A DNA stretch of 64,000 nt from Macrostomum lignano. Taxonomy: Eukaryota. This document shows positions 41,801 to 44,800 of this stretch, piece by piece. Below the pieces are notes generated by a model. It was not told where the DNA came from. It saw only the letters and a list, made by a program, of their open reading frames with translations, and searched no databases. Positions within the stretch are counted from its first letter, which is position 1. Each line of letters opens with the position of its first letter. The stretch spans positions 1-64,000 of the forward strand of contig NIVC01002750.1 of the NCBI GenBank assembly GCA_002269645.1, given 5' to 3'. Position numbers and translations under genes: made by a program.

Positions 41801-44800
41801 GCAGTAAGTCATCTACAATTGCTGAAGATGTCCTGCAGTAAGTCATCTACAATTGCTGAAGATGTCCTGTCCTGCAGTAAGTCATCTACAATTGCTGAAG
41901 ATGTCCTGCAGTAAGTCATCTACAATTGCTGAAGATGTCCTGCAGTAAGTCATCTACAATTGCTGAAGATGTCCTGCAGTAAGTCATCTACAATTGCTGA
42001 AGATGTCCTGCAGTAAGTCATCTACAATTGCTGAAGATGTCCTGCAGTAAGTCATCTACAATTGCTGAAGATGTCCTGCAGTAAGTCATCTACAATTGCT
42101 GAAGATGTCCTGTCCTGCAGTAAGTCATCTACAATTGCTGAAGATGTCCTGCAGTAAGTCATCTACAATTGCTGAAGATGTCCTGCAGTAAGTCATCTAC
42201 AATTGCTGAAGATGTCGTGCAGTAAGTCATCTACAATTGCTGAAGATGTCCTGCAGTAAGTCATCTACAATTGCTGAAGATGTCGTGCAGTAAGTCATCT
42301 ACAATTGCTGAAGATGTCCTGCAGTAAGTCATCTACAATTGCTGAAGATGTCCTGCAGTAAGTCATCTACAATTGCTGAAGATGTCCTGCAGTAAGTCAT
42401 CTACAATTGCTGAAGATGTCCTGCAGTAAGTCATCTACAATTGCTGAAGATGTCCTGCAGTAAGTCATCTACAATTGCTGAAGATGTCCTGCAGTAAGTC
42501 ATCTACAATTGCTGAAGATGTCCTGCAGTAAGTCATCTACAATTGCTGAAGATGTCCTGTCCTGCAGTAAGTCATCTACAATTGCTGAAGATGTCCCCGC
42601 AGCGAGTCATCTACAATTGCTGAAGATGTCGTGCAGCGAGTCATCTACAATTGCTGAAGATGTCCCCGCAGCGAGTCATCTAGTGACTGAAATTCAGTTC
42701 GCCTCCAGGAAGCATCTCCATGTCATACAGTCTGTCGTCCAATAGCAATGCAAAATTAGACTCATGGAAATGAATTGAAGCCGAAGTAACGTTTTGATTG
42801 GCCAGGCTGAGACGCAATAAAATTCTACCAGTATATTTAGCTTCTATCGATGCGGATAATCCCAACTGATGTTCAAGGTGAAAAAGTTAGAAAAAAACAA
42901 GAATGTTTGTCGCATTGATTTTACTCGCTTGTCTAGCGGTCACTTCGTCGGCAACTCCAGATTACGAAATCCGCCTGATGCAGTACTTGAAAAATAACAT
43001 TACAAACTACAGTCCATTGATACTGCCCAGAATCAATAGCTCTATGGTAATAAACGTGTCTGTAGAGGTGATGATCAGTCACTTGGTCTCAGTGGACACT
43101 GCTCAACAGAGCATGAAAATTTCTGCCTACTTTCAAGCCAGCTGGGAGGAGGAGCGACTCGTGTGGAATCCTGCCGACTTTGGCGGCGTCAGAGAAACTC
43201 GCTGGGAGGCCACGCAGATCTGGTATCCGACCATCATGGTCTACAATGGAAATGGAAATGACCAGATCCTGGTGCCGCAGGTCCCAGTTACACTGGGATC
43301 GTTGAATCCAAACCAGACATTAGTAACAGCATTCTGGCGCCGGGAGTTCGAGTTTTTCTGCGAATTTAACATGACCGAATTTCCCTACGATCGGCACGAG
43401 TGCGAACTGCTGTTCTTTTTCAATAATCAGGGCTACGGCCGTACAGTGTTCCCTATTATCAACCAGGCAAATCCTTTGCGGGTGATGGGCATTTTTAAGC
43501 CTAGCAACGAGTGGACTGTGACGAACGCCTCAGCTACTGTGGAACTGAAAGAATTTCTGATCACGGTAGGACAACCAGAGATAAAACTTTCGACCTTTGT
43601 TCTGCGATTGAGCTTGAAACGAGTGTCAACGTACTATTTCATCAACATCATCACGCCATTGTTGCTGCTGACTCTGCTCCAAGTGCTGGTGTACTTTGTG
43701 CCACTGGAGTCCGGTGAGAAGCTGGGATTCGGCATCACAATCATGCTCAGCTACACCGTGTTCCTGCTGCTTCTGGACGGAATCCTGCCGAAGTCGCAGA
43801 AGATGCCCGCCATCGCCCTGTTCATCACGGCCGCCATGATGTTGTCCACCGTGTCGCTGCTGCTGACATCGCTGGTCATGCTGTTCCACTTCAGACCGGA
43901 GGGCAGCCGCATGCCGAAATGCGCTCGGGCGGTCTTTGTTCGATGCCTGGGCCGCCTGCTCTGCGTCAACGGCGCCACAGCGTCACAGGTGGGCCAGCAG
44001 AGTCCGGCTGAGGCTGAGGGCGACGGCGACTGCGTGCGGAAACCTCCTGCGGCGGAACAGAAATCGAACGATTCAGACTGGGTGGTGGCCGCCCGCGCTA
44101 TCGAGAGATTCTTGTCGCTGTTCGGAGTGGTTGCTACCGCCGTTATAATTGGGAGTTTCCTGATGCGTCCGTATCTTTGACACTTTTAACTGACTAAACT
44201 GACTACTAACTGAGCATATAGTATCACTGTCGGGGGCAGAGAACCTTAGTGATAAACGCGTCTGACTCGATCCCTGGTTCAATTCCTGTGTTGGGTTGTG
44301 TGCCCGAAATTTGGCCCAGGAGGTTGTCCTTCGATTCCCAGCTATGAATATCATCCCGCAATGAACAGAGACTGTACATGCCTCACGATTAGAAAGTCAG
44401 GGCCGCTGTACACTCTGTGTGAGCGTGTGTGAGTGCGAGCCCCCCATGTAATCATTTCTATTATTACGCGTCATAGTCCTTCTGTCAGCACAATTTTTAC
44501 ATCCGTGAGCAAGCATTATAAATAGAATTGGATGCTAAGACTCTTATTCTTGGAACAACTAAATTGACCATGTCTGTTACCATTCAAGCAAGTACTGGCA
44601 GTCTTCGAAGGAAAGGACAGCAATAAGGTTTTTCGAATAAACTTTTCATATACACTGCACGAGCTGGCAAGCCTTGTACGGTCGCTATTGTCAGTTTCTT
44701 CAACAAAATTATGTTTGAATTAAAAAGCATCTGCTCTAAAAGCCGGCTATCCTAGCCTAAAATATCAGCATCCTGTTTGAGCTTAGGCATCAAATTCTTT

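Follow-up and report, generated by a model that had tools for sequence, protein, structure and literature searches.

Divergent offshoots of the nicotinic acetylcholine receptor (nAChR) from which the acetylcholine site has been stripped are known among the spiralians, and the gene considered here, which lies at 42903..44180 on the forward strand of a 64,000-nucleotide stretch of the flatworm Macrostomum lignano (contig NIVC01002750.1, positions 1 to 64,000; hereafter the window), is otherwise an unsurprising member of that repertoire. Among the closest described systems are the chemotactile receptors (CRs) of cephalopods, which are intronless, derive from nAChRs, have lost the residues that bind acetylcholine and carry a pocket that is diversified among paralogs; sensory expression, hydrophobic and poorly soluble ligands, and site-specific positive selection have all been established for them (PMC11526382). 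Intronless, tandemly arrayed and highly divergent nAChR genes are a lophotrochozoan phenomenon that includes the molluscs, bivalves having 99-217 genes for nAChRs (Jiao et al. 2019, PMC6896357); the main text of that study makes no mention of flatworm, platyhelminth, Schmidtea or Macrostomum. The annelid Alvinella pompejana has an orphan receptor, Alpo4 (PDB 8bx5), in which the whole aromatic box of the acetylcholine site is kept as F103, W159, Y199, Y205 and W65 (PMC10338036). Flatworm members of the same superfamily include the nAChR-related acetylcholine-gated chloride channels of schistosomes (SmACC), which carry an anion-type PAR/PAK motif before M2, and the 'Cys-less' ligand-gated ion channels (LGICs), which lack the Cys-loop cysteines (PMC9874803).

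The window gene is intact, encodes a complete Cys-loop subunit of the nAChR family and was previously unannotated. In its protein, a complete gating and permeation apparatus of the cation type is combined with an acetylcholine site from which most of the defining residues have gone. We lean, with confidence a little above even, towards an orphan cation-channel subunit that would be gated by a ligand other than acetylcholine, and whose paralogs would differ from one another in specificity.

Gene and protein architecture

The open reading frame (ORF) extends from ATG to stop without interruption, its 1275 nt of codons specifying 425 residues before the stop. The initial annotation had placed an intronless Cys-loop channel at precisely this position, and this proves exact: a single ORF contains both of the Pfam domains of such a subunit, Neur_chan_LBD (PF02931, 1.8e-28, spanning residues 27-171) and Neur_chan_memb (PF02932, 6.1e-22). 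The top sequence matches in the PDB are Torpedo alpha1 (5e-41), human alpha3 (1e-40) and human alpha7 (3e-40), and the best 60 are all nAChR-type, ACR-23 and Alpo4 (5e-32 over the whole protein) being among them. Identity to canonical nAChR subunits is, nevertheless, only ~22-30%.

A comparable picture is given by an AlphaFold model, which was built from a shallow alignment and has a predicted local distance difference test (pLDDT) score of 68, falling below 50 at residues 177-179 in loop B, and a predicted template modelling (pTM) score of 0.56. The model contains an N-terminal helix, ten strands, M1-M3, MX and M4, in other words the full topology of a pentameric ligand-gated ion channel (pLGIC). 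Its top Foldseek matches are alpha4beta2, alpha7 and muscle nAChR, with a probability of 1.00 to nAChR chains, and the best 50 fold matches are without exception nAChRs. By sequence and by fold, then, the nearest structures are nAChR subunits, and not those of the 5-HT3, ZAC, GABA, Gly or GluCl receptors.

The receptor shares with the canonical subunits (alpha1, alpha3, alpha4, alpha7, beta2 and beta4) their topology, the FPxD of the Cys-loop, the pre-M1 Arg, the GEK motif and the 9' Leu, and these subunits are its best matches, both for the whole protein (E ~1e-40) and for the ectodomain (69-70 bits). It departs from them in its binding-site residues, in being encoded by a single exon, in belonging to a clade of its own and in its intracellular M3-M4 loop of ~60 residues, for which the model has an MX-like helix over residues 339-353 and then disorder over 356-388. 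This loop had at first been described as very short; it is indeed short when set against vertebrate nAChRs, but it is ordinary among the other spiralian nAChR-like homologues of 410-440 residues.

The acetylcholine site

Residue assignments were checked with HMMER pairwise alignments, with an L-INS-i multiple alignment that included Torpedo alpha1, human alpha7, vertebrate alpha3- and beta2-like subunits and invertebrate homologues, and with a table of positions. In loop C, the vicinal cysteines C192/C193 are represented by I220/T221, Y190 by F218 and Y198 by L229. Cysteine occupies the position of the pair in none of the five intact paralogs known (see below). The vicinal pair is the mark of an alpha-type subunit, and because it is missing the receptor cannot be of that type. 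In loop D, the Trp corresponding to alpha7 W55 has become Y76, and across the five paralogs this position holds Y, Y, F, I and L. Loop A has WYPT in place of WxPD, with T110 at the equivalent of D89; the T110 position is variable across the paralogs, while the Tyr equivalent to Y93, retained as Y114, is invariant. These three departures from the canonical site had been proposed in the initial annotation, and the alignments bear all of them out. The same annotation had Asn at the equivalent of W149 in loop B. In this regard, it is clear that residues 168-182 contain no Trp; Asn174 is the equivalent residue in the multiple alignment, but Phe173 or Gln176 takes its place in the pairwise HMMER alignments. 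The other paralogs have A, N, S and I at this position.

The aromatic box has consequently lost three of its five positions, namely the Trp residues of loops B and D and the second Tyr of loop C, in addition to the Cys-Cys pair of alpha subunits. What is left of it is the loop A Tyr, as Y114, and the first aromatic residue of loop C, as F218, so that the receptor lacks the full box by which an interface competent to bind acetylcholine is recognised. Since the residues that have gone include both the loop B Trp responsible for the cation-pi interaction and the loop D Trp, canonical binding of acetylcholine appears unlikely on either the principal or the complementary face.

Loss of the loop B Trp together with the Cys-Cys pair is not in itself distinctive, since the alignment reveals the same in other spiralian nAChR-like proteins, from Mercenaria, from Aplysia and in an ENA entry. 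Like Alpo4, the receptor is a phylogenetically isolated spiralian orphan of nAChR type without the loop C Cys-Cys; unlike Alpo4, in which the whole box is preserved, it has been deprived of three of the five positions. A conserved WRREFEF motif in strand beta6 raised the possibility of a further, new contact with the ligand, but was not interpreted in this way, as it aligns to the PPxIFKS stretch that lies beneath the pocket.

The pore and the gating machinery

In contrast to the binding site, the parts of the protein that open and line the channel are preserved. The Cys-loop FPxD, the pre-M1 Arg (R240), the M1 Pro and the M2-M3 Pro are all present, and even distant homologues retain C153, F160, P161, D163 and C167 without exception. 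The pore entrance reads E269-S-G-E272-K273, with Glu at -1', and the 9' Leu is L282. ESGEK precedes M2 in all five paralogs, with no anion motif of the Pro-Ala-Arg type. Glu at -1' is a determinant of cation selectivity (PMC9874803), and the pore is accordingly predicted to be of the cation type. An anion-channel, ACC-like assignment was considered and rejected on the ESGEK motif; it is this motif, together with an intact C-x13-C loop, that distinguishes the receptor from the SmACC channels and the 'Cys-less' LGICs. The intact Cys-loop and cationic M2 (GEK, -1' Glu and 9' Leu) reported in the initial annotation are thus seen both by direct reading and by alignment. With its gating and permeation apparatus complete and constrained, and with Glu at -1', the receptor can be read as a working cation-channel subunit. 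A similar M2 (GFGITIMLS) occurs in one Mercenaria protein (P0100).

A clade of intronless paralogs in Macrostomum

An exhaustive HMMER scan over 1.8 billion representative proteins returned only three representatives with more than 50% identity to the receptor. Two of these are recorded as M. lignano proteins; P0002, the third, is a UniParc-only entry and is presumably from the same species. All other relatives are at most ~33% identical. Those bearing names are predictions of alpha7-, alpha9-, alpha10- or beta-like subunits from nemerteans, molluscs, a brachiopod, amphioxus, a hemichordate and an echinoderm; among the named members of the best 150 relatives there is no other flatworm, whether schistosome or planarian. 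A literature search produced no paper that links Macrostomum to this receptor family, nor one on Mlig033226.

In a neighbour-joining tree of 115 sequences, the Macrostomum proteins form a clade with 100% bootstrap support, which sits on a long branch and has no supported sister, the next nodes receiving 14% and 0%; nor does the tree contain a supported link between this clade and any molluscan family. The phylogenetic comparison with nAChRs for which the initial annotation had called hence sets the receptor apart from every canonical subunit group, in a clade of its own, while leaving that clade without a supported neighbour. On present sequences, the receptor would therefore belong to a small, nAChR-derived, intronless clade seen only in Macrostomum.

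Three further intact and intronless members stand head-to-tail within 6.3 kb on M. lignano contig NIVC01000059.1. They are termed MlA, MlB and MlC, and are accompanied by a C-terminal fragment of another copy (Table 1, where their coordinates are positions in the stretch of this contig fetched as L001). Counting the sequences encountered in database matches and in this array, the distinct intact members number five, i.e. MlA, MlB, MlC, P0002 and the window gene, with one fragment and one frameshifted variant besides; two other database proteins, P0001 and P0007, are versions of MlB. Pairwise identity among the five is 45-73%. The frameshifted variant, P0003, is a database protein of 255 residues that is 93% identical to MlC. 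Its C-terminus corresponds to the receptor gene read out of frame, and an identical peptide is encoded in the +2 frame of the window at 43511-43717, which suggests a frameshifted pseudogene or a fault in an earlier M. lignano assembly. Exact-sequence look-ups in the contig index gave no record for the window protein, the F-box ORF described below, P0001 or P0002, and a locus for P0155 alone.

Within the 64-kb window, a tblastn search with the receptor protein revealed no extra copies, and the gene there is solitary. Moreover, no synteny is seen between the window and the array on NIVC01000059.1 beyond the coding region and some short dispersed repeats, on account of which the window gene is taken to be a dispersed paralog and not the same-locus ortholog of MlC. 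The Macrostomum genes form a lineage-specific set of intronless paralogs, in which binding loops have diverged over a fixed pore. The receptor expansion that the initial annotation had considered is, as far as seen, small, amounting to five distinct intact members and some fragments.

In being intronless, tandemly duplicated, lineage-specific, divergent and short (~410-440 residues), the Macrostomum family resembles the expansions of molluscs and other lophotrochozoans, although the family as seen here is small, with five distinct intact paralogs, of which the window copy is solitary, against the 99-217 genes of bivalves. There is also a likeness to the cephalopod CRs, in that the receptor is nAChR-derived and intronless, has lost the acetylcholine-binding residues, is predicted to be a cation channel and has a pocket that is diversified among paralogs. 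A special affinity to CRs, however, is not borne out: the ectodomain scores 48.9 bits against octopus CRT1 and 48.5 bits against squid CRB1, compared with 69-70 bits against alpha1, beta4 and beta2. Direct relationship to, or membership in, the CR clade is rejected on these scores and on the Macrostomum-only clade, which comes from a tree that includes no CR sequences. Since the ectodomain is the closer to canonical nAChRs, the resemblance to CRs, which belong to a different phylum, is best regarded as convergent, with common nAChR ancestry as the probable extent of the relationship.

Differing divergence of the ectodomain and the pore

The two halves of the protein differ markedly in the extent to which they are constrained. 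Across the five paralogs, 69% of positions in TM1-TM3 are invariant, as against 22% in the ectodomain, and the ratio of nonsynonymous to synonymous divergence (dN/dS) in TM1-TM3 is 0.02-0.14. For the ectodomain, this ratio is 0.38 between the window gene and MlC, its closest paralog, and 0.14 between the window gene and MlB, these being the only pairs in which synonymous divergence (dS) is unsaturated. Within the ectodomain, the variable positions are concentrated in the binding loops: only one of the 68 positions of loops B, C, D and F is invariant, compared with 48 of 156 in the remainder (Fisher p = 5e-8), and loops B and C each have none at all. Loop A and strand beta6 are, on the other hand, about half invariant, and include the WRREFEF motif, which is invariant throughout.

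Comparison with MlC reveals a mosaic. Synonymous divergence between the two genes falls from 0.71 in the ectodomain to 0.22 in TM1-3 and 0.045 in the intracellular loop, the last of these values standing against the normally fast evolution of that loop. Third codon positions differ in 43% of cases before approximately codon 225 and in 9.6% after it; the maximum chi-square for a breakpoint there, 59.4, was reached by none of 1000 permutations. From this point the nucleotide identity to MlC is high (Table 1), and the similarity ends at the stop codon. The likeliest cause of this mosaic is gene conversion or recombination between paralogs that do not lie next to each other, which would have homogenised their pore halves as the ectodomains went on diverging. 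Low synonymous divergence in the pore half would, in this regard, reflect purifying selection and gene conversion together.

Functional interpretation

If the receptor is an orphan subunit of the kind favoured here, it would take part in a pentameric, cation-selective Cys-loop channel whose opening would not be brought about by acetylcholine at a canonical cation-pi site, but by some other ligand bound at the subunit interface. Its paralogs would then share one conductance module and differ in the specificity for ligands or for partner subunits. Several observations weigh against this. Y114 and an F or Y at 218 are kept, and the pocket stays aromatic and hydrophobic (Y76, F144 and F171-173), such that a non-canonical amine or choline-like ligand, or weak binding of acetylcholine in a heteromer, is possible. 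The alignment of loop B is ambiguous, and confidence in the AlphaFold model is no more than moderate. Recent gene conversion, and not selection on the window copy, accounts for part of the low divergence in the pore half, and an unconstrained site, as in an accessory subunit, would be just as likely to have highly variable loops B, C and F. Lastly, the receptor protein is itself absent from the protein collections searched.

The accessory role just mentioned, in which the protein would co-assemble with acetylcholine-binding alpha-type subunits, occupy non-binding positions of a heteromeric acetylcholine receptor and tune conductance, trafficking or desensitisation without binding any ligand, is the main rival; it is less likely than the orphan channel, albeit well short of negligible. 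Vertebrate beta1, alpha5 and beta3 are subunits found in such positions. Like non-alpha subunits, the receptor has neither the Cys-Cys pair nor the loop B Trp; alpha subunits match its ectodomain no better than beta2, beta4 and beta3 do, and the combination of a highly conserved pore module with binding loops that are the least constrained part of the protein is what an accessory subunit might present. The loop D Trp, which is retained in complementary subunits able to bind ligand, has, however, been lost here and its position varies among the paralogs, the clade lies on a very long branch without affinity to any canonical subunit group, and the ectodomain is under purifying selection, with loop A and part of loop E half invariant. 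Purifying selection of this kind, taken with the invariance in loops A and E, suggests that some function of the interface has been retained. The orphan channel may take a more particular form, as a chemoreceptor arisen independently of the cephalopod CRs, acting in epidermal or pharyngeal sensory cells of the flatworm on external and possibly hydrophobic ligands. To this we assign a low probability. An intronless gene with tandem paralogs, an acetylcholine cage lost with a hydrophobic pocket left behind, and binding loops that diversify over a fixed pore would all fit, such genomic traits being listed for CRs and for many chemoreceptor families (PMC11526382). Yet only five distinct intact paralogs have been seen, dN/dS lies below 1 throughout the ectodomain and so gives no sign of positive selection, and several spiralian nAChR-like proteins, none of them known to be sensory, are likewise without the loop B Trp and the Cys-Cys pair. 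The ectodomain, too, is closer to canonical nAChRs (~70 bits) than to CRT1 and CRB1 (~49 bits). As for genomic organisation, neighbouring genes in the window also have very long exons, and intronless tandem arrangements are described for expanded molluscan nAChR genes; intronlessness is, for both reasons, weak evidence. Both genomic arguments for a sensory role are weakened, one by the small number of copies seen and the other by a neighbourhood in which introns are generally few. Slightly less probable again is the still more specific proposal that this flatworm has independently turned an intronless nAChR-derived family into environmental chemoreceptors, holding the pore module by gene conversion while the ectodomains diverge freely.

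It must also be considered that the window copy is recently inactivated, or was never expressed, and looks intact through recent conversion of its 3' half from a working paralog. Absence of the protein from the searched collections would accord with this, as would the solitary position of the gene between two minisatellite arrays, the 94-97% identity of the 3' half to MlC, an intracellular-loop dN/dS of ~1.3 (albeit on very few changes) and the existence of the frameshifted, MlC-like P0003, by which decay is seen to occur in the family. The uninterrupted 1275-nt ORF with its good signal peptide argues to the contrary, as do the dN/dS of 0.38 in the unconverted ectodomain half, measured over a dS of 0.71, and the integrity of all residues that are invariant in the superfamily. 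Moreover, two other intact paralogs on NIVC01000059.1 are also unannotated, and so absence from databases reflects gaps in annotation. Of the readings set out here, a silent copy is accordingly thought very improbable.

Genomic neighbourhood

The receptor gene is bracketed by minisatellites, a 34-bp array ending 220 bp upstream of it and a 28-bp array starting 660 bp downstream (Table 1). The window is rich in such arrays, which create many spurious long ORFs. Short dispersed repeats in the window match three places on NIVC01000059.1 (4192-4275, 15242-15345 and 17808-17937 in L001) at 73-82% identity, the first two matches being inverted, and probably represent a small family of mobile elements. 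Rfam and ARAGORN scans returned nothing relevant to the receptor gene; a borderline Rfam tRNA match elsewhere in the window, which scored 30 bits against a gathering score of 29 but for which ARAGORN gave no confirmation, may be a repeat derived from a tRNA.

The nearest gene upstream of the receptor is an ORF with a C-terminal pentraxin domain that runs into a (TCTG)n microsatellite. On the reverse strand lies a DEG/ENaC gene (amiloride-sensitive sodium channel) of about three long exons, the first of which found no relative in a word-indexed protein search; the gene may be unannotated or very divergent. A single-exon gene encoding an F-box-only protein is 98% identical to M. lignano A0A1I8IH49, and ~11 kb downstream of it a PYM (Mago-binding) gene has exons that are 73-90% identical to the same protein, in the same order. 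The fusion of F-box and PYM genes in A0A1I8IH49 is probably a mis-annotation. The F-box match and the shared exon order mark the window as M. lignano or a very close relative; because identity is 98% for the F-box gene and only 73-90% for the PYM exons, it may represent a homeologous copy or one from a sibling species. HEAT-repeat exons of a multi-exon gene occupy the left end of the window.

Table 1. Coordinates of the receptor gene, its parts, its paralogs and other features of the window. Positions refer to the window unless prefixed with L001.
Feature	Position	Strand	Basis or remark
Complete single-exon coding sequence, Cys-loop / nAChR-family subunit	42903..44180	+	ORF list, Pfam, PDB matches
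Predicted signal peptide, residues 1-18	42903..42956	+	Hydrophobic N-terminus aligning to signal peptides of homologues; cleavage site inferred from sequence
Extracellular ligand-binding domain, residues 19-243	42957..43631	+	Pfam LBD, AlphaFold beta-sandwich; seven N-x-S/T sequons
Loop D region, residues 72-82	43116..43148	+	Alignments; Y76 at alpha7 W55
Loop A, residues 105-118	43215..43256	+	Alignment; W107 and Y114 retained, T110 at D89
Cys-loop C153-x13-C167 with FPYD	43359..43403	+	Read from sequence
Loop B region, residues 168-182, without Trp	43404..43448	+	N174 at W149 by multiple alignment
Loop C region, residues 209-232, without vicinal Cys pair	43527..43598	+	Alignments
TM1-TM3, residues 244-331	43632..43895	+	Pfam TM-domain match, helices in model
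M2 and flanks (-4' Glu, -1' Glu, 9' Leu, 19' Asp)	43707-43796	+	Within TM1-TM3
Intracellular M3-M4 loop, residues 332-391	43896..44075	+	AlphaFold secondary structure and pLDDT, alignment
M4 helix and short C-terminus, residues 392-425	44076..44177	+	Model helix 392-424; aligns to M4 of homologues
Inferred gene-conversion/recombination tract	43580..44177	+	94-97% nucleotide identity to MlC; starts near ectodomain/pre-M1 boundary
Paralog MlA	L001 7863..9188		Intact, intronless, not annotated
Paralog MlB	L001 10001..11305		Intact, intronless; only annotated member of the array, PAA92206.1
Paralog MlC	L001 12783..14105		Intact, intronless, not annotated
C-terminal paralog fragment	L001 16333..16674		Truncated copy
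Minisatellite, 34 bp x 42	41227-42682		
Minisatellite, 28 bp x 17	44837-45329		
Other minisatellite arrays	38000-39499, 15564-16420, 22157-23517, 31605-32400, 61012-62033, 63289-63996		Among others
Short dispersed repeats	44299-44441, 46271-46404		Matches on NIVC01000059.1
HEAT-repeat exons	3833-4453, 9430-9882	+	
Borderline tRNA match	17281-17350	+	Rfam
F-box-only gene	19603-20904	+	Single exon; ORF 19603..20901
DEG/ENaC gene	25986-29278	-	PF00858; exons 28439-29278, 27231-28151, probably 25986-26462
PYM gene	30373-33550	+	
Pentraxin-domain ORF	39610-40227	+	PF00354, 5.8e-11

Implications

The split in synonymous divergence between ectodomain and pore provides an example of modular evolution within one gene. 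A phylogeny of the TM half would conflict with one of the ectodomain half, a point worth noting when pLGIC trees are built. Neurotransmitter receptors are known to have been converted before, in the cases of the ionotropic receptors, which come from ionotropic glutamate receptors, and of the chemotactile receptors, which come from nAChRs. Should the family prove to be gated by a ligand that is not acetylcholine, flatworms would join the groups in which neurotransmitter receptors have repeatedly become orphan or sensory channels, and they would do so with M. lignano, a species that is tractable for the de-orphanising of such channels.

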